NCBI RefSeq assembly: GCF_001194135.2
Contig: NC_069008.1
Span: 12,324,215 to 12,374,428 of the forward strand
Reading direction: 5' to 3'
Source: Octopus bimaculoides
Lineage: Eukaryota
Length of the DNA stretch: 50,214 nucleotides
This document shows, piece by piece, positions 735-50,214 of this stretch (its first letter is position 1; every line of letters starts with the position of its first letter). Made by a program: the position numbers and the translations under genes. The notes under the pieces were generated by a model. It was not told the DNA's origin. It worked only from the letters and a program-made list of their open reading frames with translations, and searched no databases.

Positions 735-1698
735 ACAGGTCATCCGCTGGGGAGCTAATTTCCACAACTCTACAGTTTCTCTTCTCCATCCCAAATCATT
801 ATATCAGGTTTGTTGTGCTTACATTTTATTGAGGTCTTCACTGGGACATTCCACCAGTACCCCTTTTTACTGCGGGTTCTTATTTCTTTGTCCTTGGGGT
901 TTTCCTTCCGATGGATTTCATTATAGAGTGTCCTTGAGAGTCTCATCGGTAGATAATACAGTGATGACATTTTCGGACAACTGCTTATGATGTGGGTGAT
1001 ATCTTCAGTGTGAACTCGACGAAGTCTGCATCTGTTGTCACATTTGATTGCTTTTCCTGCATCTCTATCCCTTTTGTGCATCAGGTATTTGGTTGATATT
1101 TCTTGTCCCTGGACTGCAAACACATACTCTTCGAGGTGGGAGGTAGTAATCTGGCTATTAGTCCATGATAGACTGCTTTGATGATCAATGTTACTATCAT
1201 CTCGGAGCTTTCTATTAACATATCCATGCATAGTCTTCTGCTCATAAAGGCTCATCCTTTCATCTGATGATACGTTGCAGTAGAATCGTGTGACTTCGTT
1301 GGGCATGTATTCTAGGTTATCAGACAAGGAATGTTGCTCAAGGAGCTGCCTTCTAAGTCTTATGATGCTAACAGAATCATGTATGGAAACTTGGTCAAGG
1401 GATGCACTTCGACACTTGGTGGTTAAAAGATGTTGCCGAAGGGATATGATACGACATTCAAAGGCATTTTGGATCGATGTTAAACATCTACTGCCAAGTT
1501 TTCGTTTTAGGTAGAGGCGATCAATGTCATTGTTTATGTGGAAATTATGTGTGCTTGTTAGTATTTTTCGGGTTTTCACATCAATGGCTCTGATCTCATC
1601 AAGCATCCAGTCAAGCAGCGCAAATGTTGGTACGAGTACTGACACTGCAAGCACATTGCGGTTCACTGTTTTATTGAATGCAGAGAGTCTTGTGTATT
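735..1698 (-). mobile_element. Non-LTR retrotransposon fragment of an RLE-bearing clade (R4/Dong/Hero-like): RT thumb, degenerate CCHC knuckle, start of restriction-like endonuclease
   Basis: Translation contains LLDW..EIRAIDVKTRKILT..IDRLYLKRKLGSRCL (RT C-terminus), CRLRRVHTEDITHIISSC (CCHC with C>R) and HNKPDIMIWD. A frameshift then precedes RVVEISSPAD (PD..E motif). Confidence 0.8.
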
Positions 1699-3511
<1,813 letters not shown>

Positions 3512-3897
3512 ATCTTCAGGAAAAACTCAGTTCCTTAGGTTTCTGACATTTTTGCAATATTTTTCTTCTCAAATTAAAATATTTCTATATATTTTTTGTT
3601 TTTGTTTGCAAAGTTTATTCCTTACCAAATTTTTCATCTGCTGTATTTCTATCCATCGTTATCTTCATCTAACAGTTCAAATGAAAATTTATCCACGTTT
3701 AATTAGCACACAAACTCATTTTGTACACACTCCAGATTACAACACAGAAATTTTGCTAACAGTCTCAGTTCAAAGCAAATATTTCACAGGAATTCTACCA
3801 TGAATTTATTAAAAGAGGCTTAAATATCTGTTCTAGAGTCTATAAAGGATAATAAATTGATGATGCATCTTTTGCTATGCTAATGTCATCTGATATT

Positions 3898-3920
3898 CTG
3901 AAATAATAAAGAAACACCAG
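3898..3920 (-). promoter_or_regulatory. Splice acceptor of the ZNF-A terminal exon (exon starts 3897)
   Basis: gtttctttattatttcAG|aatatcagatgac; same acceptor and following sequence at 26497 (-), 43207 (+) and 50043 (+). Confidence 0.7.
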
Positions 3921-4541
3921 TTAAAATATACAGACTACTTAAAACAGAGAGATTCAACAATAGAAAATTTACATTTCTATAGAGATTAATTGCAGAAACA
4001 AATATTTACCTTAACAACTGAACATTTTAATTTACTAAAATTTACATAGCAGAATTTTGTGCGAAGCATACATATTTGCTAACTATAGCTACACCTTCAC
4101 ATTGTGTTAAGATTATATGTATATCAAACTACAAAATAGTAGACAAAAACCTTCTCTCTCCAGAAATATAACTTGACATGGTTATTTAGTCCCAGGTCAG
4201 CTTTGACTGAGTAAATATGATTAAAGACATTCCATCCATGAATTTCCTATCTTTTTCATTAGTACTATATATATCTAGGACTATATTGTCCAATATAGAT
4301 CTCAATTTTTAAGAATGAAATGAATTTGAGGGAAATGTAGCTGCTATTTTTATTATGTTGTGCAGCTACATAGAGCTCCTAGATGGTTCACAGTTGCTAT
4401 TTAGCCCAAGGTTAACCCTGATTACGCTACTTTATGATCAAAATAAGATGTTTTTCACAGATCTTATGACTATTATGACAGATCAATCAAACATAAACAT
4501 TGATGAATAAAGAAAAGGCAACCAAAAAAGAGAAAAAGTGA

Positions 4542-5380: not shown

Positions 5381-6780
5381 TAAATCATCATCATTTGAAA
5401 GTTGTCTTCTATGCTGGTACAGGTAGGATTTTTTACAGGACCTCTCCAGACTCCAATTGTCCATTGTGGGATGGTTTCTATGGCCTGATGCCCTTCCTAA
5501 TGCCAACCACTTTACAATATGTGCTGGGTGCTTTTCATGTATCACCAGCATGGGTGCATTTACACAGCACCAGCACATGTGCATCTTATGTAGCACCAGC
5601 ACCTGTAATGGACAAGCATGTATGTATGGATGACAGTGATTTTACTTAGCTTCTCAAGTACAGCAAATCACATCTTCTGGTCCCTTGTCATTTCATCAGT
5701 GAGGTTCAGCATCCAAAGATCTTTTCTCACCACTTTGTCTGTCTTCCTGGGTACCCTCCACAGTTAGAGCTCAGCACTTCTTTATGCAGCTGTCCTTATC
5801 CATGCACATCACATGACCAGACCAGTGTAGTCTTCTCTCTTGCACACATCTGATGCCTACTTACACCCAGTTTTCCTCTTAAATCATTTACATACTGTCA
5901 TACAGGCACACTGACATTACCCGTCCAGCAGAGCATGCTAACTTCATTTCTTTTAAGCCTTCACAAGTCTTCTGTAATCAAAGCCTATATTTCACTGCTA
6001 TGTAGCATAGTTGTATGTACACAGGCATCATACAATCTGCCTTTCACTCTGAGGAAGAGGTCCTTAGTTACCAACAAAAGTAGAAGCTCTCCGATCTTTG
6101 CCCAGCCTGTTTCTATTCTGGCAACTACACTTTCAGAATTTCACCCACCACTGCTAACTTGATTGCCTAGGTAATGAAAACTGTCTACTTCTTCTAATGA
6201 TCCCCCTGAACATTTGAGGGCGTCTATTGTCTGCACATTTTTGGTGCTTATTGCACCCGCACATGTGCCACACACAAAGACTATTCTTTGTTAACCTCCT
6301 CGATACTGCTACACCTCTTATGTGTTCAAAGCTTACACTGAATATAACGTATGGAATTTCTACCAACACCCATCTGACATATTGAACAGGTCCATCTCCC
6401 TACTTACTAGGACTTTGGTTTTTGCTAAATTAACTCTAACGCCCTTTGATTCCAGGCCTTGCTTCTACATTTGAAATGTCTTCTCTACGTCAGATAGTGC
6501 TTCAGCTAATAAGAACAAGGTCATTAGCTAGGGGTAGCCAGTCTTGAATTTCTCTGTTAAGCTCTGAATGACTAAAATAAACAAGAGGGGGCTGAGAAAT
6601 GATCTTTGGTGAACTCCTAACTGTACACTGAATTCATTGTTATACTCGTTGCCAACCTTCACCTTCCTGGCAGCAACAATAATAGAAGTTATGGTCTTTA
6701 CACACACAGGAATACGGTAAAGGTGCTGAATATGCACACAAGCAATGACCTCCAGGACAAAAGAGAGGTGGCTGCACACA
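5381..6780 (-). mobile_element. RTE-clade LINE, 5'-truncated, with (ATG)n/gat tail
   Basis: RT remnants (VQLGVHQRSFLSPLLFILV; LLPLLVTK.L.LRVKG.LYDACV). 3' UTR ggatgcccttcctaatgccaacc and atcatcatc tail on +. Confidence 0.85.
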
Positions 6781-7354
6781 GACGACGAGATATAACTACA
6801 ATTTAGTACCCCATGCGAGACTATTTTATCATAACTTTCCGGAAGAATGCATTTTGTTGCATTAAATTTTGCAGAGATACGGTTATTGTGGGTGTAGAGT
6901 AAGATGAAGTTGGTAAAATTTAAGAAAAAAATATTTGGAGGAATTTCTAATAACCTTTGTTATCAATTTCTGTGACTTTAACATTTCTCACATAAGTTTT
7001 AAAGATTTATGTTTGAAATATCAAAATACCAATAATATAGGCACAGGCTGTGTGGCAAGAAGCTTGTTTCCCAACCACATGGTTCCAGGTTCAGTCCCAC
7101 TGTGTAGCACCTTGGACAAGTGTCTTCTACTATAGCCACAGGCTAACCAAAGCCTTGAGTGGATTTGGTAGCTGGAAACTGAAAGAAGCTCATTGTACAT
7201 ATATATATATACTGGAGCCTGGTGTTGCCATCTGGTTTCACCAGTCCTCAGTCAAATCGTCCAACCCATACTAGCATGGAAAGCGGACGTTAAACGATGA
7301 TGATGACGATGATGATAAATAATGAGAAGATGGATTTGTTATAAATCTTAATTT

Positions 7355-8914: not shown

Positions 8915-9577
8915 CAAGGGGGTGCTGAAAAGTTCCTGGTTTTGCGTAAAACAAAATACAGGAGGATCAGTTAATTATGATTTTATTGAACATATTCCCT
9001 TCTCAGATTCACACACTTCTTCCAGAGGTCCTTCAGTTTTGCTATTTGGCACCCATTTTGCAGAATGCTGTCTCATGTCCAGAATGTTGTGGATGATGTG
9101 GCCAACTCTTTCGCGGGAAATCCCCAGTGTCTCAGCTATGACTTTAGCTGAAATCCAACGGTCCTTCAGAATCATGAAATGCACAATGTCCGCTTTGTCC
9201 TCTGTCGTCGCAGAAGTTGGCCGTCCTGACCTCGGTTCATCTGTGACTTCAAAATGACCAGTCCGAAACCTTGACACCCAGATTTTCACTGTGGAGTAAG
9301 ATGGGCAGCCCTCCTTCAAGACTTTCTTCATCTCGCCATGGATTTCTGCTGCTCCTTTGCCTTGCAAAAAGAGGAACTTCATGACCGCTCGCGCTTCAAT
9401 TTTACCAAAATACACTGTAGGAGCTGCCATCATGCGTTAAATCTGCAAAAAAGAGAAAGATATATTTCATACCATCACGATATTTTTGCATATCTTCTTC
9501 TAAACAGTCGTCCTATCTCCCCTGTAAAGGTAACTGCTCTACCTTTTCGCAATGCCCTTAAATACAGTACCCCCTTG
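8915..9577 (-). mobile_element. Mariner element, internally deleted (HTH region joined to extreme C-terminus), both TIRs and TA TSD
   Basis: TA|CAAGGGGGTGCTG...CAGTACCCCCTTG|TA. ORF has EARAVMKFL, DEPRSGRP and AKWVP, then jumps to KLKDLWKKCV; the DDD domain is missing. Confidence 0.9.
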
Positions 9578-10084: not shown

Positions 10085-11240
10085 TTGGACTGCTTCAAAC
10101 TCTGCTGTTAGTTTGGCACTATGTGGTGACTACGGCTGAGAGCAGTAGTCCAGGTGGCTGAGAACAAAGGTCCTCCACAGGGTCAGCATAACCTCTTGGT
10201 CTCGTCTTGAAGTACCTTAGCATCCATCCTGCCAGTTGTCTGCACTTTCCAGCTGTCTTGGTAACATGCATATGAAATGATGTATCATTGCACATACTGA
10301 TCCCCAAATCTTTCACTGCCTGTGACTCTGGGATTGTGGTTGTGGTGCCTTCAGGTCCTGTATATGCAGGCTGCAGTGTACTTGTGAGTTGATAGTGCAA
10401 TGCTTGAAATTTTCCAGCATTAAACTGCATATTGTTTACTTCAGCCCGCTTGTATATTGCATTCAGGTCTTGCTGTAAGCTTGTGATGTCATCTGGATTT
10501 TTTATTGCCTGTGATAATTTTGTATCATCAGCATAGCTAGTGACAATGGCTAACCAAATGACCATGGACATGTCTAAGAGGGCTATTATAAACAGTAATG
10601 GCCCCAAGACAGTTCCCTAGGGGACATCACTTAGAATTTGAGTATCCTCAGAAAGGGCAACACTGGGTGCAGCTGCCTGACTTCTGTCTTTAAGGAAGCC
10701 ATGCAGCCACTCCCCCAGTTTACCAGCAATGCAAAGGACTCACTACTTCTGACATATCATGCCACGATCTAACTCATCAAAAACCTTTGCGAAGTCAAGA
10801 TATATCACACTGACATCTGCATGATCAAGTAGCTGTTTGAAAACCCATTCATAGTGTTGTAAGAGCTTTGGAAGGCAGCTTCTTCCTAGATGAGAGCCAT
10901 GCTGTTTAGTAAGCAATTTTCTTCTAGGAAATTATCAGTTTCTTTCTAATGATTCGTTCCATGACTTTACTGATATGTGAAGTCAGAGAGAACAGCCTGT
11001 AGTTTCTGGCCTCTGCCTTTGTGGATAGGGCATATAATGCCTTCTTTTCGTTCTTAGGAAGTTTACCACTTGCAAGGAAACTCTAGAAAAGTATCTAAAG
11101 TGGTTTCACTAAAGCCTGCTAACATAAGTTCAGGAGAATAGCTGGGAAGCGATTGGGACCAGTTGCTGAGCTTGAGCTCATCTCATCTATGGCTGTTGTT
11201 ATATCTGCAACCTCAATGTCAATGTAATTGATGGTTGCCA
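10085..11240 (-). mobile_element. CR1/L2-like LINE RT fragment
   Basis: DVP*GTVLGPLLFII, SYADDTKL, LQQDLNAI, MQFNAGKF, VKDLGI; upstream IYLDFAKGFDE motif. Confidence 0.85.
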
Positions 11241-11715: not shown

Positions 11716-11895
11716 TAAAGAATAAAAAATTTAGAATGGTACAACAATGCCCTATAAAACAAAAAATGGACTATACACCTATTGTAATTTGGTTATCTAT
11801 AGTCTGATGATATTTCAGAATTACAATTCCTTCTTCAGATCTTCTTAGCTGGAGTCTCAGCTATAAACTCTATATTGTATATATATATATAACAT

Positions 11896-11937
<42 letters not shown>

Positions 11938-12116
11938 NNNNNNNNNNTATATATGTAATATTGTTTATAGCAGAGACTCCAGCTAAGAAGATCTGAAGAA
12001 GGAATTCTAATTCCGAAATATCATCGGACTATAGATAACCAAATTACAACAGGTATATAGTCCATTTTTTGTTTTATAGTGCATTGTTGTACCATTCTAA
12101 ACATTTTTATTCTTTA
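11716..12116. repeat. About 150-bp imperfect inverted repeat around an (AT)n tract and a 10-N gap; each arm carries a minimal hammerhead-like motif
   Basis: 11716-11870 is the reverse complement of about 11964-12116 with a few substitutions. Motif GAU-CUGAAGA-A-GGAAUU(nn)AAUUCY-GAA-AUAU-C-AUC at 11841-11806 (-) and 11990-12025 (+). Confidence 0.7.
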
Positions 12117-13102: not shown

Positions 13103-14539
13103 TGTGTGATCCGAAAGTAACTCCCTATTCTAAAATAACTATAATATATTTTTGAAGTATAATTTCTCCAATTAATGAATATGAGAAGAAAGTATATTAC
13201 ATGGACTTTTATTTAAAATTCAATATGGGCACCATCATTCGCCACCAGCTTTTCAAGTCGACCATGAACCGCATCAACTGATTTCACAAGGAACTCTTGC
13301 GGGATGGAACTAATAACTTCACATANNNNNNNNNNNNNNNNNNNNNNNNNNNNNNNNNNNNNNNNNNNNNNNNNNNNNNNNNNNNNNNNNNNNNNNNNNN
13401 NNNNNNNNNNNNNNNNNNNNNNNNNNNNNNNNNNNNNNNNNNNNNNNNNNNNNNNNNNNNNNNNNNNNNNNNNNNNNNNNNNNNNNNGTTAAGTCAGGGC
13501 TTCTGGCTGGCCATTCGTGTGAACCACAACGACCCATCCATTTTCCAGGAAATTGGGCATTCAGCCATTCATGAACAACAATAGCAAAGTGTGGAGGAGC
13601 ACCATCTTGCATGAAAATTAAATCTTCAATATTGTCCCAAGCACTGATAGTTGGCCAAACTTCATCTCTCAACATAGTGAGGTACCTTTCGGCGTTCATG
13701 GTATCATGAAGGATGAAGGGGCCCACAATCCTGTCCAAAGTCATTCCACACCATACCGTTATCTTGGGTCCATTCTGCATTTTTTCACTGGTAACACGAG
13801 GATCTTCTCCTGCCCAGTGGCAGTTATGATGGTTTACAAACCCACCTATGTGGAATACAGCTTCATCACTCCAGAGAATATTTTTTAAGAGATTGGGCCA
13901 ATCTCTAAACCAAGCCAACATCATCTCTCCAAACTCAATACGAATGTCGCAGTTTTTGGCAGAGAGTGCTTGGCAGTAGTGTGGCTTCTAAGCACACCAT
14001 TTAAGCTCATTTTTAAGCACATTACGTACACAGGGAAACAAGAACCCACTTTCTCTTGCTGCTTGTCGAATTGACTTTTGCGGGCTATGGGTAAACATTT
14101 TTTGAACAACTTGCACTACCTCAGGGTCTCTGAATTTGGAAGGGCGACTGCTTCTTTGAGTATCAGTCACAGATCCTGTAGTCATGAGTTTTGCATGACA
14201 ATTCTTGATTGTCTTTGGGTCAATTTGAGCATGTCTTCCCTTAATGGTTCTCCACCATCTTTGCACTAGAACAATGGATCGCCCAACTTCATAACGTGCA
14301 GCTATCTGGGCGCGTTCCTGTACAGTAAGACGTCCAGCCATTTTTGTAGGGCTTTGAAATTTCAAACAAATTAACAAGATTAAAAACCAAATTCATATAA
14401 CAGATCTGAAAAGAAAACAAAAGCATAGATTTAATTGCCACACATTAAGTAACATACACACAAAAATTGAGAAACATATTACAGCATTTGAATAAATTAT
14501 AGTTATTTTAGAATAGGGAGTTACTTACGAATCACCCTG
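13103..14539 (-). mobile_element. Near full-length Tc1/mariner element, DD41D (rosa-like) type
   Basis: TIR core gtaactccctattctaaaataactataat at both ends; right end cagggtgattcg|TA. Transposase has WSDE, QDGAPPH and WPARSPDL. Confidence 0.9.
13213..14341 (-). pseudogene. DD41D-like transposase with one visible in-frame TAG (13988-13990); part hidden in gap
   Basis: ORFs 13988-14377 and 13319-13924 are in the same frame. C-terminus ...NDGAHIEF* at 13213. Spacing from the QDG aspartate to SPDL implies D41D; the third D lies in the N-gap. Confidence 0.8.
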
Positions 14540-15119: not shown

Positions 15120-15945
15120 CAAGTAGATGGCCCTGCTCAATCTGTAGGAAAGGCATTGGTAGAAACTCCATAAGAAGTAGCCAGTGCAAGCTATAGACAC
15201 ATAAGAGGAGCAGCAATATCAGAGGAAGGTTAACCGGGTGTATAGTTTTTGTGTGTGGAAGGTGCATGGGTACAATAAACACAAAAAATGTACAGAAAAT
15301 AGACTCCAGTAACTGCCAGTGGGGTAAGCTAGGGGTAGTAGATGGCTTCCGTTATCTAAGTGACCAAGTTAGTAGTGGAGGTGGATGCTCTGAGAGCATA
15401 GCTGCAAGAATAAGAATAGATCAGGTAAAGTTCAGAGAGCTCCTACCTCTGCTGGTAATAAAGGGTTGCTCTCTCAAAGTGAAAGGTAGACTGCATGATA
15501 CCTGTGTGTGAACAGCTATGCTAAATGGCAGTGAAACATGGGCTGTGACCATCAATGTCATGCGTAGGCTTGAAAGAAATGAAGCTAGTATGCTTCTCTG
15601 GATGTGTAATGTCAGTGTGCATGTTTGACAGAGTGTAAGCATCTTGAGAGAAAAGCTGGGCATAAGAGGCATCAGATGTGGTGTGCAAGAGAGACAACTG
15701 TGCTGGTATGGTCATGTGTTACATATGGATGAGGACAGCTGTGTAAAGAAGTGCCGATCTCTAACTGTGAAGGGAACCTGTGATAGAGGTAGACTCAGGA
15801 AAACATGGGACGAGTGGTGAAGCATGACCTTCAAACTTTGGGCCTTACAGAGGCAATGACTAGTGATCGAGACCTTTGGTGATATGCTGTGCTTGAGAAG
15901 ACGAGTCAAGCCAAGTGAAATCATAGCTGTGGCCAATGCTTTTTT
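15120..15945 (+). mobile_element. RTE-clade LINE fragment (RT C-terminal region)
   Basis: FRYLSDQVSSGGGCSESIAARIRI..KFRELLPLLVIKG..LKVKGRLHDTCV; matches the copies at 5640-6200 (-) and 42180-42750 (+). Confidence 0.85.
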
Positions 15946-22865: not shown

Positions 22866-23486
22866 TTATGCAATATTGATTGATGTTTGATATCCAGGCA
22901 TGCCACACACTGGACAATATTAACAACATCCGAAATATCATTTTGGCAGACAGATAAACTTCTCTCACAAGACTGAGACCTCCTTTTATACAGTTACTAC
23001 AAACAGCATCTGTTGCACTCGCAAACTATGTCCCACCCCAACAGGACATACTCTGTAAAACTGCGTGATACGTTCAGTACTCGCTTGTTGCTTGTGTATC
23101 TTCCCTCCTTGCTGCTACAGCAGTCTTTGGCTATGACCACTTCCTAATTAACTTTATTTAAGTTTGAAAGTGTTTAGTTACAAAAAAATTAATTCTCAAT
23201 CTGCCGTTCAAAGGGAAAAGATCTGTTTTCAGTATCTAATAAAAAAAATTTCTTTTTTGTGAAATTTCACTTCTTATAACCTTATTTTAACTTTGTTAAA
23301 GTGATTAATTATGCTTAATCATAATTTTTTCTTTTTTTTTTTGTCCCCAGTAAATATTTTTCACATCATTCAGAAGGTCACTGATTGGTATAGCAAAAAA
23401 TAATTCTGGAGACATAAACAAACAGCAAATGCTTTGAAAATAAAAAGTAAAATATAGACAAGCAACAGATGAATGTGTTGAAAGGC

Positions 23487-23572
23487 TTTATTAATTATGA
23501 CTCTTCCCAAATATAATATTGGTTTCAAAAGACAGTAAACAAATTCAAAATCTGGAGGAAATTACTTTTATT
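23487..23572 (-). terminator. Two AATAAA polyadenylation signals in the ZNF-B 3' UTR
   Basis: AATAAA at 23572-23567 and 23492-23487; both conserved in paralog C (43638, 43712). Confidence 0.6.
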
Positions 23573-23899
23573 AAAAATATCACAGAAATAAGTAATCACA
23601 ACAGTGTTTAGTTATGTTAATATAAAATACGGTGTGAGGAGGCTTACAGTTATGTCTCCTTTCTATTGTGAATATATTTAGTTATAGATGGTGTTTTTTT
23701 TTTTATTTTCACAGAAAAGGTAACTAGAAGAGGTTGGCATCATTAGAAGTTCAACCAGCTGTAAAAGACTACCTTAGAAAGAGAGCCATGACGAATGGCT
23801 TCGTTGTTGCATGGATAAAGTCCACAAAGCTAAGCCCACCTCACATCAGGAGGAACTTAAAATGTTTGATGATGTGTTAAGAATTTTCACTGATACAGT

Positions 23900-24132
<233 letters not shown>

Positions 24133-26085
24133 CTATCCTGTGTGAACACGTTTATGTATTCTTAACTTACTACTTTCAGAGAATGATTTACTGCAAATAT
24201 CACAATGATAAGGTTTTTCTCCTGTATGAATACGTTTATGTATTATTAAGGTACTTTTTACAGAGAATGATTTACTACAGATATCACACTGGTATGGCTT
24301 CTCTCCTGTGTGAATACGTTTGTGGTAAATTAAGGTACTATTTACAGTAAATGATTTACCACAGATATCACACTGATATGGCTTCTCCCCTGAATGAATG
24401 CGTTTGTGTGTTATTAAATTACTACTTTGAGAGAATGATTTACTACAAACATTACAGTGAAATGGCTTCTTTCCTGTATGAATACGTTTATGTATAGTTA
24501 ACTCACTACCTCCAGAGAATGATTTACCACAGATATCACATTGGTATGGCTTCTCTCCTGTATGAGTACGTTTGTGTAGAGTTAACTCACCACTTCCACA
24601 GAATGATTTACCACAGAAAATACACTGATATGGCTTCTCTCCGGTATGAATACGTTTGTGCTTAGTAACATTACGAATTTGAGAGAATGACTTACCACAG
24701 ATATCACATTGGTATGTCTCTCCTCTTACATGAACCTGTTTGTGTGCTGTTAAGTGAATACTTTCAGAAAATGATTTGCCACAGATAACACAGCGATATG
24801 GTTTTTCTCCTGTATGAATACGTCTATGTGTCGTTAAGCTACTACGTACAGAGAATGATTTACCACAGATATCACACTGATATGGCTTCTCTCCTGTATG
24901 GATACGTTTGTGTCGTTTTAAGTTAAGACTTGCAATAAATGATTTACCACAGATATCACATTGATATGGCTTCTCTCCTGTATGAATACGTTTGTGTAGT
25001 TTTAAGCTATGAATTACAGAAAATGATTTACCGCAGATATCACACCGATACGGCTTCTCTCCTGTATGGATACGCTTGTGTACAGTCAAGTTAACAATTT
25101 GGGAGAATGATTTATTACAGATATCACACTGATATGGCTTATCTCCTGTATGAATTCGTTTGTGAGTAGTTAAGGTTGTATTTCGAGTAAATGATTTACC
25201 ACAGATATCACAACGATACCGCTTCTCTCCTGTATGAAGACGTTTGTGGCCAGTTAATTCACTACTTCCATAGAATGATTTACCACAGATTTCACAGTGA
25301 TAAGGCTTCTCTCCTGTATGAATACGATGGTGTTTAGTTAAGTCATTACCTTGACTGAATGATTTACCACAAATATCACAGTGATATGGCTTCTCTCCTG
25401 TATGAATACGCTTGTGAGCAGTTAAGTAACCTTTTTGAGAGAATGATTTACCACAGACATCACAATGAAATGGCTTCTCTCCTGTATGTACACTTTGGTG
25501 AGAAGTTAAAGTACATTTTGCAGAAAATGATTTACCACAGATACCACAATGATATGGCTTCTCTCCTGTATGACTACGTTTATGTGTAATTAAGTCACCA
25601 CTGCCAGGGAATGATTTACCACAGATATTACAGTGATATGGCTTCTCTCCTGTATGAATTCGCTTGTGTTTTGTTAGGTTACCGTTCCGAGAGAATGATT
25701 TACCACAGACATCACAGCAATATGGTTTCTCTCCTGTATGAACACGTTTGTGTACTGTTAAGTGACCAGTTTCAGTGAATGATTTGCCACAGATATCACA
25801 CTGATGTGGCTTCTCTCCTGTATGTACATGTTTATGCGTGGTTAAGCTACTACGTACAGAGAATGATTTGCCACAGATATCACACTGATATGGCTTCTCT
25901 CCTGTATGTACACGTACATGTGTTGTTAGGCTACTACGTACAGAGAATGATTTGCCACAGATATCACAGCGATATGGCTTCTCACCTGTGTGAATAAGTT
26001 TATGGTTAGCTAGATTGCCCTTTTGAGAGAATGACTTTTTACAGATATCACAGTTGTGTGATAGTTTTCTTGTATCTTTAGGCAT
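24133..26085 (-). CDS. Intact C2H2 zinc-finger protein ZNF-B, 650 aa, 23 tandem Kruppel-type fingers, no effector domain in this exon
   Basis: ATG at 26085 (MPKDTRK), homologous to the ZNF-A start; the ORF track begins at an upstream TTG. 23 C-x2-C-x12-H-x3-H units with TGEKP linkers and no internal stop. In-frame TAA at 26112-26110 upstream. Confidence 0.95.
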
Positions 26086-26496
26086 GGCTTCAGGCAAAGA
26101 ATCAATTCCTTAATTTTCTTACTGTTTTACAAAATTTTTCTCCTCAAATCCCAATATGTGTATACATATTTCTCTCTCTATATATATATATTTGTTGCAA
26201 TTTTTGCTTTTATAATTTATTCATTACAAAGTTTTTCAACTTCAATATTTCTCTCCAGTGTTATCTTTATCTAACAATGCTTGAAAATTTGCCCAAGTTC
26301 AATTTGCACACACATTTTGTACACATTCCAGATTATAATGTACAGAAATGTTGCTAATAATCTCAGTTCACAGCAAATATGTAACTGGAACTCTATGATA
26401 AATTTATAGACACAGTGTTAAATATCTGTCCCATAAAGTATTTTCATTCAGTCTTCAAAAGATGCATCTTCTGCTATGCCAGTGTCATCTGATATT

Positions 26497-26520
26497 CTGA
26501 AATAACAAATAAACAACACT
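26497..26520 (-). promoter_or_regulatory. Splice acceptor of the ZNF-B terminal exon (exon starts 26496; 411-nt leader before ATG)
   Basis: gttgtttatttgttatttcAG|aatatcagatgac, conserved in four paralogs. Confidence 0.7.
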
Positions 26521-26710
26521 TTAAGATACAGAGGCTACTTAAAGAATAGATTCAAATTTATAACATTTCTATAAAGATAAATTGAAGAAATAAAGATTTA
26601 TGATAACTGAATGTTTTAATTCACTAAAATTTACATCACAAAACTCTCTGTGAAGCTTACATATTAGCAAACAAGAGCTACACCTTCACATTGTGCAAGC
26701 ATTATATATA

Positions 26711-26853: not shown

Positions 26854-27281
26854 AACATTATAATAAACAATAGAATTGTAGACAATAGCCTTCTCTCTCC
26901 AGAAATATAACTTGACATAGTTATTTAGCCCTAGGTCAGCTCTGATTGAGCAAACCTGATTAAAAACATTCTGTCCATGAACATCCAATCTTTTTCACTA
27001 GCATTATCCAATATAGATCTCAATTTTTAAGAATGAAATGTGTAATTTGAGGGAAATGTAGCTGCTATTTTTATTATGTTGTGCAGCTACATAGAGCTTC
27101 TGGATGGTTCATAGTTGCTATTTAGCCCAAGGTTAATCTTGAATACGTTACTTTATGATCAAAATAAGATTTTTTCACAGATCTTATGAATATTATGACA
27201 GATCAGTCAAACATAAAAACATTGATGAATAAAGAAAAGACAACCAAAAAAGAGAAAACAACATTAACAATAAATATGACA

Positions 27282-27944: not shown

Positions 27945-28660
27945 GCCATGTACAGGAATGCTATTAATAAAGTAAGAGTTAGCAATGAGTACAGAGACGA
28001 ATTTAGCGTACAAGTAAGTCTTCAGCAAGGCCCAGTCCTCATCCCCTCCTAGTCATCATTGTCCTCCTGGCCATAACAGACAAATTTAAGACTGGAAGCC
28101 CATAGGAAATACTATATTCTAATGGTTTGCTCTCATAGCTGAATCTGTAACAGAACTAGAAAAGAAATTCAAGGTGTGGAATCAAAGGGTCTTAAAATTA
28201 ATGTGACAAAGACCAAGGTATTAGAAAGCAAGAAATCAGACAGGACCCTACTCACTTAAAGTAAGAGGCCCTGCTCGATACATAGCAAAGATATGGGCAA
28301 AAATTCCATTTGGTGTACCCAGTACAAGTTATGGACACAGAAGAGGTGCAGTGAAATAGTAGGAAGGTTAACACAGAAAGTAGTTTGTATGTGGAAGATG
28401 CACAGGAGACATAAGGTCTACAGATATATAGAAAATTAGTTTCCTCAAATGCCCCAGAGGCTCTAAAGAAAGTGGATAATTTCTGCTACCTAGGTGACCT
28501 AATTAGCAGTGAAGGACATACCAAAATTGTAGTAGTTAGATTAAGAATAGGATGGAGAAAGTTCAGACAGTTTTTACCTCTGTTGGTCTCTCTCTCTCTC
28601 TAAGTGAAAAGACAATTGTATGATGCATGTGTAGAAACAGCAATGTTACAGTGTCCCACA
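27945..28660 (+). mobile_element. RTE-clade LINE fragment
   Basis: VQVSLQQGPVL.PLL, FCYLGDLIS, RIGWRKFRQFLPLL; same family as 40955-42925. Confidence 0.8.
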
Positions 28661-36989: not shown

Positions 36990-37395
36990 GTGTGAACATG
37001 ATCATGGAGATTGGCAGGCATCACATAAGTTATAGGATGTCACAGAATCTTGTCAGAAGGTGTTTGGCAGCTCAGTATACAGTAAAGTTTTGTGGTGCCT
37101 TGCTGTACTCAAGATAACCTGTACTCCACAGCAGAAATGTTAAGGCTGTTCCCCTGGTGGTGAAGATTGATCAGCAAGAGTCCTGCGCCAGTATCACATA
37201 AAAAGCACTCGTGCCAGTGTCACATAGCAGCACTCAGTACACTCTGTAAAGTGGGTGGCATTCGAAAGGCCATCCAGCCATAGAAATCAAGCCAAATCAG
37301 ACTGGAATCTAGTGCTGCTCTCCAGTTAGCCAGCTCTGGTCAAACTGTCCAACACATGCCAGCATAGACAATAGACATTAAAAGATGACGATGAT
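36990..37395 (+). mobile_element. RTE 3'-UTR/tail fragment
   Basis: gaaaggcatccagccatagaaa...ccagcatagacaatagacattaaaagatgacgatgatg. Confidence 0.65.
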
Positions 37396-37459
37396 GTAGT
37401 GTACCCTCGAGTGAAATTCCTCTCCCCTTTATTATATATTCGTGCATACAAACATAGCA

Positions 37460-38149: not shown

Positions 38150-38440
38150 GCAGAAGTGTAAATGCTGCTCCCCCTGCTGAACAGGATGGGCGTTCTAGAG
38201 CCCCGTGCCAGTGCCATGTAAAAAGCACCTGCGCTGGCGCCACGTATAGGCACTCATGCCAGTACCACGAAAAAGTACTCAGCACACTCTGTACGGTGAT
38301 TGGCGTTAGGAAGGGCATCCAGCCTTAGAAACGAAGTCAAATCAGACTAGAACCTTGTGCAGCTCTCCTGCTTGCCAGTTATGGTCAAACTGTCCAACCC
38401 AAGTCAGTATGGAAAACAAACTTAAAGGATGATTATGATA
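38150..38440 (+). mobile_element. RTE 3'-UTR/tail fragment
   Basis: ggcgttaggaagggcatccagcc...cagtatggaaaacaaacttaaaggatgattatgat. Confidence 0.7.
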
Positions 38441-39016: not shown

Positions 39017-39965
39017 AGGCACCGGCATGGCTGTGTGGTACGAAGGAGGCCCCAACCCCCGAAACCTCTAAAAGGAAGAAGAAAAGAAAGAGAGATGGGA
39101 AGTGGCCGGTGGACGTTTATGTGCCGCCGACCGAACCAGTCACCCCTCCGGAAGGAAATGTACCATCGGAGAGGGAGGTCCTGNNNNNNNNNNNNNNNNN
39201 NNNNNNNNNNNNNNNNNNNNNNNNNNNNNNNNNNNNNNNNNNNNNNNNNNNNNNNNNNNNNNNNNNNNNNNNNNNNNNNNNNNNNNNNNNNNNNNNNNNN
39301 NNNNNNNNNNNNNNNNNNNNNNNNNNNNNNNNNNNNNNNNNNNNNNNNNNNNNNNNNNNNNNNNNNNNNNNNNNNNNNNNNNNNNNNNNNNNNNNNNNNN
39401 NNNNNNNNNNNNNNNNNNNNNNNNNNNNNNNNNNNNNNNNNNNNNNNNNNNNNNNNNNNNNNNNNNNNNNNNNNNNNNNNNNNNNNNNNNNNNNNNNNNN
39501 NNNNNNNNNNNNNNNNNNNNNNNNNNNNNNNNNNNNNNNNNNNNNNNNNNNNNNNNNNNNNNNNNNNNNNNNNNNNNNNNNNNNNNNNNNNNNNNNNNNN
39601 NNNNNNNNNNNNNNNNNNNNNNNNNNNNNNNNNNNNNNNNNNNNNNNNNNNNNNNNNNNNNNNNNNNNNNNNNNNNNNNNNNNNNNNNNNNNNNNNNNNN
39701 NNNNNNNNNNNNNNNNNNNNNNNNNNNNNNNNNNNNNNNNNNNNNNNNNNNNNNNNNNNNNNNNNNNNNNNNNNNNNNNNNNNNNNNNNNNNNNNNNNNN
39801 NNNNNNNNNNNNNNNNNNNNNNNNNNNNNNNNNNNNNNNNNNNNNNNNNNNNNNNNNNNNNNNNNTATATATATATATATATGTGTGTATGTCTGTGTGT
39901 GTGTGCATCTTTGTGCCTGTGTTTGTCCCCCCATCATCTCTTAACAAGTGTTGGTGTGTTTATGT
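39017..39965 (+). mobile_element. SINE head (39017-39040) and 3' part (39885-39965) separated by a GC-rich insert and a 682-N gap
   Basis: ggcatggctgtgtggta is abruptly followed by unrelated sequence; tgtgtttgtccccc...gttggtgtgtttatg lies after the gap. Confidence 0.55.
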
Positions 39966-40954
39966 TCTGATTAAATGAAGCAATATTCAAGTAATTTCCA
40001 TCATGTGAATATTGAAAAAGAAATAAAAGATTAAATGATTTCGGTGGTGACTATGGCAGCTGATTTATATCCCTGCTAGCGATATAAACAAGAGTGCATT
40101 TTGCTCCCAAAAGCCTAAATGAGAGTTTCTTCCGAGGTTACTTCCACAGTATTCTGTGCACTAGTACAACATCCACTTTTAAATGGGGATAAAACTTAAC
40201 TTTTGGTATTAACACTACTTCTGTTGCTAATAATTGTGTGTGTGCACGCGTGCACGTGCCTTTTTGCATTCGCATGTTTCAATTGATAATGAGTGTCACC
40301 ATTTGAACAGCCACTTTTTCAGGTTTGCCTGGGTCAGACAGAATCCACAGAGGTGGAATTTTACCAAATGCTCTTCCTGTTCTTCTTACAACAAGATGCT
40401 CTTCCTGTTTCCAAGCAAGATAATTTTTCCTCATGTCTCGACATGTTTTCATAGCATGTTGGAAACAAATGATGTGATGATGCTTATTTGCTACTATCAT
40501 GTGATATCAAGACAAGATGACACAAAAACACAGCAGTCTTCTTTTGCTTTGCGTCAATCAAAATTCACTTGCATTTCTTTGGCTGGCCTTTGGATGTGGA
40601 AGGAAAGACTTGCCCAAGATTCAACACAGTAGTACTAAACTTGAAATCATGTGGTTGGGAAGCAAATCCCTTAAACATACAGTCATGCCAGTTATAATTA
40701 TTGTTTATGTTATTTTCTCCTCAATGTTTTTTGCTTGTCATGAAAACTGTAGGAGCTTTGAAAACGGCTTGATTTTGATCCTCGCTTGCTATCTGGTCAA
40801 ATAACATACCAGCAGCTACATTAGTCTTAAAAATTAAAAATTGTATTTAAGGATCCCATGAATAGTCAGAGATTTAGAGACATTTTAACAGAAGCATTTA
40901 ATGAAAAGGAGGAGGAGGAGTTACAGACTTGTAATATAGAGCATAACTGGAAGT

Positions 40955-42925
40955 TCTTACGGGACAACTTGTTGAGAGCCGCGGACCAAATTTGTGGTTA
41001 GTGCAAAGTCCCAACCAGGCCTATTGTGATGTGATAGAACAATGTAGTTGATAAGGCCATTAGAGAAAAGAAATGGGCTTTGAAGGACTGGAAGGGTAGC
41101 AGTAGCTAGAAGGGAAGCTAGGAAGCAGGTATACTTAGCCAGAGATGAAGCAGAAAGGAAGAAGTTTGCCAATGTTGTGCAGTTTGAGGACCAGCGGTTT
41201 GAAGTGTTTCAATTTGCAAGACAGTGTGCCAAGGAAAACTATGATGTTGGAGAGAACTGTGTTCGCATGGATGATGGTTCACTTGCAATTAGTGACACTG
41301 CAAAGAAAGGGGCTTGGAAGTGCCAATATGAAAGGCTACTAAATGTACAGAACTCATGGGAGAAGGTGAGTCTGTCCACTGTGGATCCAATAGAGGGACC
41401 AGCAATCCGAATAGACAGCAGCATGGTAGATAAAACCATGAAGGATATGAAAACCAGGAAATTCCCCGGCCCATCAGGGATCACCGCTGAGATGCTTAAA
41501 ATATCAGGCAGTGTGAGTTATGCTCTAGTTACCCATATAGTTAATCAGATTGTACACGAAGGAGTCATACCCAATGACTAGTGTAGCAATATCATCGTTA
41601 ACTGCTACAAAGGTAAAGGTGATGCCGTAGTCAGAAATAATTACTGAAATATCAAATGATGAAAGTTACGGAGAAGGCCATAGCCCAACTAATTTGGAAG
41701 AGTTAGTCTAGATGAGATGCAGTTTGTTTTTGCGCCGGGGAGAAGCACCACTGATGCTATATTTCTGATAAAGCAGCCTTTGATAGGGTACCCTGCTTCC
41801 TTATTTGGTGGTCAATGCGGACACTAGGAATAGACGAGTGGTCAGTGAGAGCTGTACAAGGATACTGTCAGCAAGGTGAGGGTGGGCAACGAGTATAGCA
41901 ATGAATTCAGAGTACAAGTAGGAGTTCTCCAAGGATCAGTCTTCAGCCCCCCACCCTTGTTCATCATAGTCCTCCAGGCGATAACATAGAAATTTAAAAC
42001 ATGTTGCCCCTGGAACCTCCTCTGTGCTGATGACCGTGTTCTTATAGCCGAATCACTTCAGAGGAAGGTGAACAGGGAAAATAGTTTTTGTGTATGGAAG
42101 GCGCACAGGTACAATAAACACTAAAAATGTACAGAAAATAGACTCCATCAAATTCTAGGCAGGAAAGCTTGAAGTAGCTGATAGCTTCCATTATCTAAGT
42201 GACCAAGTCAGTAGCAGAGGTAGATGCTCTGAGAGCATAGCTATTAGAATACGATTAGGCTGGTCAAAGTTCAGAGAACTCCTACCTCTATTGGTAATAA
42301 AGGGTCTCTCCCTCAGAGTGAAAGGCAGATTGTATGATACCTGTGTGTGAACAGCCATGCTACACAGTAGTGTAACGTGAGCTGTGACCACTGAGGAAAT
42401 ATGTAGGCTTGAAAGAAATTAAGCTAGTATACTTTGCTGGATGTGCAATATCAGTGTGCATGTACGACAGAGTGTCGATGTCTTGAGAGAAAAGCTGGAC
42501 ATAAGAGACATCAGATGTGATGTGCAAGAGAGATGACTGTGCTGATATGGGCATGTGATGCATGTGGGTGAGGACAGCTGTGTAACAAAAGTGCTGATCT
42601 CTTATTGTAGAGGAAACTTGAGGAAGAGTTATATCCAGGAACATATGGGGTGATGTGGTGAAACATGATCTTTGAACGTTGCCCCTCACAGAAGAAATGA
42701 TAAGTGGCTGAGACTTTTGTAGTATGCCATGCTTGAAAAAACTCAAGTTAAGTGAAACCGTAGTTGTGGCTGATGCCGGTGTCATGTAACAGGTACCCAT
42801 GTTGGTGGCTCATAAAAAGCACCCAGCCGTAGAAACCATACTAAATTAGATTGGAACCTGGTGCAGCTCTCCGATTTATCAGTTTCAATCAAATCGCTTA
42901 ACCCATGCCAGCATTGAAAGCAGAC
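40955..42925 (+). mobile_element. RTE-clade LINE, longest copy in the window, frameshifted, with 3' tail
   Basis: PGPSGITAEMLK, YKGKGDA, QVGVLQGSVFSP, RIGWSKFRELLPLL, tail gatgatgatg. Confidence 0.9.
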
Positions 42926-43021
42926 ACTAAATGATGATGATGTAGTCCTAGATATACAATACTAGAGAGAAAGAATGGGTGTTCATGGATGTTATTGTCC
43001 ACTATTCTGGAATCTAAGCTT

Positions 43022-43757
43022 TATACAAGATTCTGTAATGTAAATTTAATAAACTGAAAAGTTGTTCAAGAAAATGTTTGTTTCTGCAGTTTAGCTCTGT
43101 AGACATGCTATAAAGTTTCCACGATTGAATCTATATTTTCTAAGTATATCTATACCTTATAGAGATAGTTTCTATATCTTACACTGTTATTTTTTTTACT
43201 ATTTCAGAATATCAGAGGACATGACATAAGAGAAGATGCATCTTCAAAACATACCATATTTTAAAGACTGCAGAATAGATATTCAAAACTATTTTCATAA
43301 ATCTATAGTAGAATTCCTATAAAATACTTGCTCTGAATTGAGACTATTAGCAAAACAAAATTTCTAGAGTGTGTACAAAATGAGCATGTATGTCCTAATA
43401 AAGCTTGGATAAATTTTCTTAGGATTTGTTGGATAAAAGTAACATTAGACAGAAAGAGAGCAGCTGAAACGATTGGTTCGGAATAAACGAAAATTTGAAA
43501 ATTCGCCCCAATCTGAAGCGTAAATGTATTCAGATTGGAAAGGAGATATAACAGTGTGTAATAACAGGCTTCCCACACTCTGCTTTATATCAACACAACT
43601 AAACACTGTTACAATAACTTACTTCTGTGATATTTGTAATAAAAGCAATTTCCTCCAAATTTTGAATTTGTTGACTGTGTTGAGAAAAGTATTATATTTG
43701 GGAAGAATCATAATAAAGCCTATAAACACATTCACCGGTTGTTGTTTGTCTATATTT
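43022..43757 (+). pseudogene. ZNF-C: finger-less paralog (intron end, acceptor 43207, leader to 43488, 32-nt filler, 3' UTR 43521-43757)
   Basis: 43022-43488 matches the ZNF-A/B intron and leader. 43521-43757 matches the ZNF-B 3' UTR (23680-23453 minus). No ATG-finger region lies between. Confidence 0.8.
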
Positions 43758-43964
43758 CCCTTAAATCTTAAGTATTTATGCGTCACGACTATGATCGTTC
43801 ATGGCTTTGGCACAACTTGATAAGCTTTCTCAATACTGGTCGCTTTCTCGCTTGGGTTTGCTATTTATTATGGTCATTTCTTTTCCACTTCATGTTCCTT
43901 TTGGCAGTATCTTCGAATCTTAACCTGCATTCTTTTCCCCCTAACATAGTTGGGAGTAAATGAC

Positions 43965-44420
43965 TTGTCTGGGGAGTTTCTTGTTGTCCATCCTGCGTAC
44001 ATGGCCAAACTAACGTAAATTTCTGTCAATGAGGATTTCCATCATAAGAGGCAGGCCAGCAGGCAAAATTTTTATTCCCACGAGAGTTCCAGATCCCAGC
44101 AATGAACTCATCTGGATACAGTCAATCAAGAGATCACCTCGAAAATCCACATACTTTGTACTACTACAGTACAGCCAGTCAGGCATAAAATGGTGTATGC
44201 TGCTCTGTGAGTACAGCATAGTATATCTCACATAAGCACCACATCCCCACCACCATCCTCATAGATCAATTCAGCACTATCTCTATATGAAGCTAACATT
44301 AGGTACTTATGCTCAGACTGACATTAGTGACATTGCATGTACCTACTGATATAGGCAAGGAGGGCGCAATACGTCACAATGCCATATTGATCACGATATT
44401 TCCAGATCAACACCAACATT
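43965..44420 (-). mobile_element. Old RTE/BovB-like LINE RT C-terminal fragment
   Basis: AGLPLMMEILIDRNLR*FGHVRRMDNKKLPR (RW.GHV.RM motif). Confidence 0.6.
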
Positions 44421-44459
44421 TCAAATTAAGCATGTAGAAAATAAGTTCAAAAATTAGAA

Positions 44460-44646
44460 GGTAATTTTTCAGATTAACACCCGCACGATCTTCACTAGGG
44501 TGTTAGGGTTAGGGTTTTAGGGTCAGGGTTAGGGTCTTAGGGTTAGTTNNNNNNNNNNCCCTAAACACTAACCCTAACCCTGACCCTAAAACCCTAACCC
44601 TAACACCCTAGTGAAGATCGTGCGGGTGTTAATCTGAAAAATTACC
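44460..44646. mobile_element. Foldback MITE, Merlin-like, with TTAGGG-type repeats; 76-bp perfect TIR; 8-bp TSD AATTAGAA
   Basis: 44460-44535 is the exact reverse complement of 44571-44646. TSD at 44452-44459 and 44647-44654. Terminus GGTAA fits the Merlin GGNRM consensus. 10-N gap in the centre. Confidence 0.75.
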
Positions 44647-49994: not shown

Positions 49995-50214
49995 CACTGA
50001 CAAGTAGTCTATATTTTAAACTGATGTTTCTTCCTTATTTCAGAATCATAGATGATATTGAACTAACAGAAGATGCACCTTCAAAACTTTCCATCGTTTG
50101 GTTAAGAACTTAATTAGTGACAAGCTCTGAAATGTGCTGTTTGTGAGTAAATTGCGGCCTTAAGAATATTATTCAACTACTACAGTAGTTGAGTGATATA
50201 TATATACATGTATA
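49995..50214 (+). other. Intron end, acceptor (50043) and start of the terminal exon of a fourth ZNF paralog (ZNF-D), truncated by the window end
   Basis: aagtagtctatattttaaactgatgtttcttccttatttcAG|aatcatagatgatattgaactaacagaagatgcaccttcaaaac matches the A/B/C acceptor region. Fingers are not visible in the window. Confidence 0.65.

Follow-up and report, generated by a model that had tools for sequence, protein, structure and literature searches.

The question raised by this locus is how a unit of an octopus C2H2 zinc-finger (ZNF) family came to consist of a leader joined almost directly to a 3' UTR, with the coding region between them gone, and whether such a unit, here called the cassette, is a dead remnant, the source of a functional RNA or a product of faulty assembly. 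Octopus genomes hold a very large and recently expanded C2H2 ZNF family, and the loss of ZNF copies in these genomes has, to our knowledge, been little described. The window, i.e. the whole stretch of 50,214 nucleotides of Octopus bimaculoides DNA analysed here, is AT-rich, contains nine runs of N and carries a cluster of decaying ZNF units. Four ZNF-related units are present in all, with the cassette and a partial unit at the window end (unit D) on the plus strand, and with ZNF-A and ZNF-B on the minus strand (Table 1).

The cassette and its relatives in the window

Self-BLAST of the window aligned positions 43012-43488 (plus strand) with ZNF-A 4073-3613 (minus; 71% with gaps, E 1e-63), positions 43171-43487 with ZNF-B 26532-26216 (minus; 69%, E 5e-29) and positions 43521-43757 with the ZNF-B 3' UTR at 23680-23450 (minus; 79% with gaps, E 5e-55). 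These three matches cannot be due to chance. Positions 43012-43488 were also paired by alignment with ZNF-B 26662-26216, and they correspond to the intron end, AG acceptor and 281-nt leader of the two minus-strand C2H2 units, with identities of 77% to ZNF-A and 70% to ZNF-B. For ZNF-B 26215-23681 (2535 nt) there is no counterpart in the cassette, which lacks the rest of the leader (its last ~130 nt), the ATG, all coding fingers and the first part of the post-stop region, and neither a finger ORF nor a Pfam match was found in it. The fusion of leader to 3' UTR with the coding region gone, as claimed in an earlier sequence-only reading of this DNA, was confirmed at each coordinate by self-BLAST, alignments and direct reading. 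The extent given in that reading was also exact with the exception of its start at 43022, which proved too short, as homology reaches ~42947 and then continues in colinear blocks to 40538. The 3' segment matches the 3' UTR of ZNF-B, the reference paralog of that reading, and the leader is nearer to ZNF-A than to ZNF-B.

Upon direct reading of the cassette, its acceptor AG was found to be preceded by a T-rich tract, and the acceptor core TTATTTCAG/AAT is common to all four units in the window, with the cassette differing at the first base only. The 3' end of the cassette leader is itself an AATAAA (43482-43487), which is kept in ZNF-A and ZNF-B. The stretch 42947-43025 carries on the intron sequence of ZNF-A and ZNF-B, interrupted by a deletion of ~135 nt between 42991 and 43012 that, relative to these two units, is found only in the cassette, and an equally cassette-specific insertion of 21 nt is located at ~43161-43181, in the branch-point zone. 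No poly(A) or A-rich tract was found 3' of the second AATAAA and past 43757.

Table 1. Positions of the cassette, its parts and related features within the window
Feature	Position	Strand	Basis or remark
Upstream region colinear with ZNF-A upstream	40538-42991	+	sensitive blastn, 69-78% identity
Upstream block	40538-40715		colinear with ZNF-A side 7188-7016; sensitive blastn
Upstream block	41865-42067		colinear with ZNF-A side 6673-6485; sensitive blastn
Upstream block	42061-42739		colinear with ZNF-A side 6301-5651; sensitive blastn
Upstream block	42778-42827		colinear with ZNF-A side 5571-5523; sensitive blastn
Upstream block	42940-42991		colinear with ZNF-A side 4286-4233; sensitive blastn
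SINE-like repeat ending in (GAT)n	42800-42946		inserted in upstream intron of the cassette; absent here in ZNF-A and ZNF-B
Intron-end remnant	42947-43207	+	alignment to ZNF-A and ZNF-B; polypyrimidine tract, then AG acceptor 43206-43207
Leader, non-coding (5' UTR part of large ZNF exon), 281 nt	43208-43488	+	direct reading, alignments
Junction filler, 32 nt	43489-43520	+	direct reading, repeat analysis
Perfect 10-bp inverted repeat, 11-nt loop	43508-43538	+	spans boundary of filler and 3' segment; absent from ZNF-B
ZNF-B 3' UTR homolog	43521-43757	+	84.9% ungapped vs 23680-23450, K2P 0.17
First AATAAA	43638-43643	+	within TGT AAT AAA AGC
Second AATAAA	43712-43717	+	likeness to ZNF-B fades 40-70 nt beyond
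ZNF-A intron end and leader, nearest relative of cassette 5' half	3613-4073	-	self-BLAST, K2P
ZNF-B, intact reference paralog	23450-26662	-	exon start 26496, ATG 26085, stop 24133, two AATAAA in 3' UTR
Unit D, fourth acceptor core and first ~55 nt of leader	50002-50096	+	E 4e-14; runs off window end

ZNF-B has an intact ORF of 650 aa at 24136-26085 (minus strand) with 23 fingers and a leader of ~410 nt, and is the sole annotated gene within 14136-36085; its protein has a single record, in O. bimaculoides GCA_001194135.2, chromosome CM046628.1. Past its stop, at 23900-24133, three to four decayed finger units are seen out of frame, the array having been shortened from the 3' end by a premature stop. 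In ZNF-A (~770-4100, minus strand) the finger ORFs are fragmented, with non-finger sequence between two finger blocks (2032-2739); a 375-aa ORF has two fingers fused to a long non-finger stretch, and the 3' end of the unit is missing. The non-finger sequence in its 3' part is probably an insertion, and ZNF-A is itself a pseudogene, so that gene death is common in this cluster. Unit D comprises ~45 nt of intron end and ~55 nt of exon, with a GTGAGT at 50143-50148, i.e. 99 nt after the acceptor, and in this paralog the leader start may form a short internal exon within the 5' UTR. The acceptor 12-mer also matched at 11811 and 32009, which was attributed to chance for both sites, their surroundings being devoid of similarity. 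Fragments of transposons, mariner-like as well as of reverse transcriptase, were also seen in the window at 8975-9433, 10119-10607 and 13319-13924, with matches to a Mos1-type HTH domain, a reverse transcriptase and a DDE_3 transposase.

With regards to relatives outside the window, a homolog search with ZNF-B gave vertebrate and other non-cephalopod ZNFs only, among the 120 matches listed, while a search with its N-terminal 43 aa gave no candidate and exact-product look-ups with the two longest ORFs of the cassette found nothing on record. Five metagenome matches to a pattern of the leader core were rejected as chance, as beyond this pattern they resembled neither the leader nor the 3' UTR nor the finger profiles. 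The literature on cephalopod C2H2 expansion that was searched is silent on exon structure, UTRs and pseudogenes.

Duplication, deletion and the junction filler

Homology with ZNF-A runs ~2.5 kb beyond the intron end of the cassette, with order and relative orientation preserved. Some of the upstream blocks are also dispersed repeats, the order and strand of which nonetheless match ZNF-A. Because homology is kept in the intron (~260 nt of intron end) as well as in the colinear upstream region, and no A-rich tract is present, the cassette can be identified as a DNA-level segmental duplicate of a whole gene, and an origin as a retrocopy or processed pseudogene was ruled out on the same grounds. 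Homology of intron and flank, in blocks to 2.5 kb, together with lost coding capacity, is what characterizes a non-processed pseudogene, and in place of the finger-encoding ORF of a C2H2 gene we found only sub-significant relics of ~1.5 decayed finger units.

Other copies of the SINE-like repeat found upstream of the cassette acceptor are located at 37271-37400, 38315-38437 and 7198-7305. A dispersed repeat of ~0.7 kb, with at least four copies in the window in both orientations (42058-42776, 15121-15939, 5651-6397 and 28259-28650), is found close to each of the three ZNF units. Upstream of the ZNF-A and ZNF-B introns, positions 4120-4536 and 26859-27258 are 85% identical to each other, compared with ~77% in the adjoining intron and leader, and inside this block an identical 37-nt hairpin, ATGTAGCTGC-loop-GCAGCTACAT, is found at 4335-4371 and 27056-27092. 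The block, which is mostly missing from the cassette, may represent a regulatory element, a first exon or a tract of gene conversion.

The 32 nt between leader and 3' segment are made up of, in order, GAAAATTT, GAAAATTC, GCC, CCAATCTGAA and GCG. The first of these pieces, the reverse complement of 43411-43418, is followed by a near-tandem copy of itself, GAAAATTC, and CCAATCTGAA is a perfect reverse complement of 43529-43538, 11 nt away, whereby direct or inverted copies of nearby sequence account for 26 of the 32 nt, with GCC and GCG lacking a source. In the filler, 18 of 32 nt are accounted for by exact matches of at least 8 nt to flanking sequence (p 0.0055 against shuffled filler; p 0.04 against other 32-nt windows, 3.9% of which reached this figure), and neither the deleted part of ZNF-B nor the remainder of the two leaders matched the filler significantly. 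From this pattern, with its modest statistic (p 0.005-0.04), we take the filler for a scar left by error-prone end joining with templated insertion. End-joining deletion scars of the Polymerase-theta type carry templated insertions, and the insert in the cassette resembles them in having direct and inverted copies taken from within 100 nt, one of the inverted copies being snap-back-like at 11 nt from its template. It differs in that the mechanism is here inferred from one old germline junction at p 0.005-0.04, with an enzyme that cannot be identified from sequence. There may alternatively be no filler at all, if the 32 nt are a diverged form of ZNF-B 23712-23681 (~58% identical by eye, in A-rich sequence) and the deletion occurred via AATAAA microhomology at both breakpoints.

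The copied filler pieces are still perfect, whereas the cassette lineage has accumulated ~0.2 substitutions per site. The duplication therefore seems clearly to predate the deletion, with the caveat that only intact copies are recognisable as such.

The 3' segment probably begins in ~1.5 decayed finger units. A profile made from the two 3' UTRs gave ~24 weak hits in the window, ~20 of which coincide with finger arrays in both strand and phase (best E 4.7e-4). Positions 43521-43559 align with finger codons over a stretch of 13 residues, and positions 43625-43643 align with the finger codons of C-D-I-C-G-K. The reverse test was marginal, as a finger profile run against the array-masked window placed the cassette first at E 0.054. 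The first AATAAA (43638) was probably derived from the finger codons TGT GGT AAA TCA (Cys-Gly-Lys-Ser). Provided that these relics are genuine, the 3' breakpoint falls within the eroded end of an array that was once present here, with TGT-GGT-AAA as the source of this AATAAA, and part of the ZNF 3' UTR, including a poly(A) signal, was probably recycled from decayed fingers. A never-filled 'empty site' predating insertion of the array was rejected on account of these probable relics 3' of the junction. The view that all fingers had been deleted accordingly needs some modification, in that the coding fingers are gone while ~1.5 long-decayed units probably remain in the 3' segment. Likewise, of the two breakpoints that had been placed outside the array, the one in the leader indeed lacks finger similarity, but the 3' one probably falls within the eroded array tail.

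A finger array present in the animal could also have been dropped in contig building. The nine runs of N could be taken in favor of such an error, as could the placement of the 3' breakpoint in finger-derived sequence and the palindromes around 10-N gaps (44460-44646, which is perfect, and 11716-12116), which suggest local errors. The first of these palindromes, ~0.8 kb downstream of the cassette, is a 76-nt stretch of 100% complementarity with telomere-like repeats (TTAGGG-type and CCCTAA-type), and is either an assembly artefact of a contig join or an interstitial head-to-head telomeric repeat; the second, with 87% over ~400 nt, is centred on the gap at 11938-11947 and suggests a systematic artefact at 10-N joins. 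The cassette junction, however, lies mid-contig in a stretch (39866-44548) that was found to contain no Ns, within unique sequence that differs by ~15-30% from all paralogs. What is gone also includes unique sequence (the N-terminus and the ATG with 130 nt of leader) that would have survived a repeat collapse, the leader breakpoint is not finger-like, and the filler has a repair-like structure of its own. We hence regard an assembly artefact as highly improbable, and the earlier judgement that a simple collapse is unlikely was upheld.

Divergence, processing signals and RNA features

K2P distances in the leader region were 0.27 between the cassette and ZNF-A, 0.395 between the cassette and ZNF-B, and 0.27 between ZNF-A and ZNF-B, from which branches of 0.20 were obtained for ZNF-B as well as for the cassette, compared with ~0.07 for ZNF-A. 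When intron and exon parts were compared, the distances of the cassette were 0.25 and 0.28, respectively, to ZNF-A, and 0.40 for both parts to ZNF-B. The leader thus evolves like the intron, and with a branch equal to that of ZNF-B the empty copy has not diverged differently from an intact gene. In the 3' UTR alignment 30% of all hexamers were fully conserved, with a chance of ~0.1 or more of keeping two AATAAA, so that retention of these two signals is unremarkable. As the junction scar looks young, retention of the signals may furthermore date from a time when the gene was intact. The retained acceptor and poly(A) signals had initially been taken as a hint of constraint, an idea not supported by the equal rates of intron and exon or by hexamer retention at chance level.

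A mini-uORF of four codons (ATG-NNN-NNN-NNN-stop), ~10 nt into the exon, is found in the leader starts of ZNF-A (3897-3850), ZNF-B (26496-26450) and unit D (50044-50090), and is broken in the cassette alone, by a change of ATG to AGG and a 1-nt deletion. A second upstream ATG, within AGAAGATGCA, is seen in all four units. It is possible that the mini-uORF or the shared upstream ATG is a translational control element of the family. Folding of the leader RNA revealed nothing unusual compared with shuffles (z +0.47). The 3' part of the cassette had z -3.0 (-2.1 without the junction hairpin) as compared to z +0.97 for its ZNF-B counterpart, and since this signal is seen in the cassette but not in ZNF-B, the structure is not a conserved feature. 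No Rfam family was found in the whole window. In the 113-nt acceptor core, using unit D as outgroup, private changes numbered 8 in the cassette versus 19 in ZNF-B (p 0.05), and the cassette was the unit most similar to D. These two units, both on the plus strand, may be sisters, which would explain the few private changes.

It was also clear that the two halves of the cassette differ in their distance to ZNF-B, with 69.7% identity and K2P 0.395 for the leader as compared to 84.9% (ungapped) and 0.17 for the 3' segment (Fisher p 1.6e-5), the latter being more than twice as near. This low divergence has three possible explanations: constraint acting on the 3' UTR of ZNF-B, and on that of the cassette before it ceased to be a gene; a chimeric remnant formed by a deletion across two neighbouring genes; or gene conversion towards ZNF-B. 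By the latter two, the leader and 3' UTR would derive from different ancestral copies, either through a deletion from an A-like leader to an adjacent B-like 3' UTR or through later conversion of the 3' part by ZNF-B, with the cassette still being a dead remnant. That the 5' half is nearest to ZNF-A and the 3' half to ZNF-B, with the heterogeneity given above, is in line with such a mixed origin, but the same numbers would result from constraint on the 3' UTR along the living ZNF-B lineage and, prior to the deletion, in the cassette. The comparison moreover has ZNF-B as the one other 3' UTR in the window, with no third or outgroup 3' UTR, since the 3' end of ZNF-A is missing and the unit there reads into unrelated non-finger sequence. 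We consider a mixed origin unlikely, and see it as a variant of the explanation preferred below.

A functional RNA consisting of UTRs only would be spliced via the cassette acceptor, maybe from an exon shared with unit D, and polyadenylated, whereupon it could act as a decoy for UTR-binding factors or miRNAs, or the cassette could serve as a terminal 'trap' exon. The acceptor core and the block AGAAGATGCA kept in four of four units, both AATAAA, the low 3' UTR divergence, the few private changes in the acceptor core and the folding of the 3' part beyond shuffles would all agree with such a function. Each of these features must however be set against the findings that signal retention fits chance, that intron and exon evolve equally fast and that the fold signal is specific to the cassette and partly due to the junction hairpin. 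In addition, the upstream conserved block is mostly lost with a SINE-like repeat inserted there, the mini-uORF is broken, and the deletion looks recent, which would have left little time under any new constraint. A UTR-only RNA with function hence seems very unlikely to us. The decoy or regulator role suggested in the sequence-only reading found no support, considering the equal K2P of intron and exon, the branch no different from that of ZNF-B, the broken mini-uORF, and the SINE-like insertion and ~135-nt deletion upstream of the acceptor.

An even bolder version would have the cassette as an exon in use, with a plus-strand upstream promoter, possibly shared with unit D 6 kb downstream, from which transcripts would splice into 43208 and end at the cassette poly(A) signals. 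The resulting UTR-only RNA would titrate regulators of sibling mRNAs or prematurely end cluster transcripts, and empty cassettes would be recurrent in octopus ZNF clusters; we give this version hardly any credence. A cassette RNA would, if transcribed, share UTR sequence with sibling mRNAs in the manner of PTENP1-type competing RNAs and UTR-derived RNAs. PTENP1 is, in contrast, a processed pseudogene whose expression has been demonstrated, along with shared miRNA sites, whereas the cassette is known from its sequence alone.

Origin of the cassette and its bearing on the ZNF family

Taking these results together, we find it likely that the cassette is what remains of an octopus C2H2 gene, a non-processed pseudogene that was duplicated at the DNA level and lost its coding part by a deletion of ~2.5 kb. 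The first step would have been a duplication, within the cluster, of an entire gene unit together with several kb lying upstream of it, the copy being inverted with respect to ZNF-A and ZNF-B. The loss of ~2.5 kb would have followed much later, through a double-strand break or an error of replication, upon which error-prone end joining would have rejoined the ends and left the 32 nt of templated filler. The copy has further acquired the SINE-like insertion, the 135-nt intron deletion and the 21-nt insertion near the branch point. Most likely the remnant is without function and any RNA made from it would be a by-product. Counting against a dead remnant are the intact acceptor, polypyrimidine tract and poly(A) signals, the K2P of 0.17 in the 3' segment versus 0.395 in the leader, for which past or present constraint on the 3' UTR may be responsible, and the 8 versus 19 private changes in the acceptor core.

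The cassette is similar to the non-processed pseudogenes and relics known from tandem C2H2/KRAB clusters in being duplicated at the DNA level within a cluster, in retaining intron and flank homology, in having lost its coding capacity and in lying among decaying neighbours. ZNF genes usually die through frameshifts, stops and partial array loss. The cassette differs in having died by one clean deletion of the whole coding region that spared the acceptor and the poly(A) signals, for which no published octopus example was found in the literature searched. As such, the locus would provide a clean example of one route of ZNF loss, in which a single end-joining deletion leaves the RNA-processing signals behind, and it would have a bearing on regulation of the family only if such remnants prove to be both expressed and recurrent.
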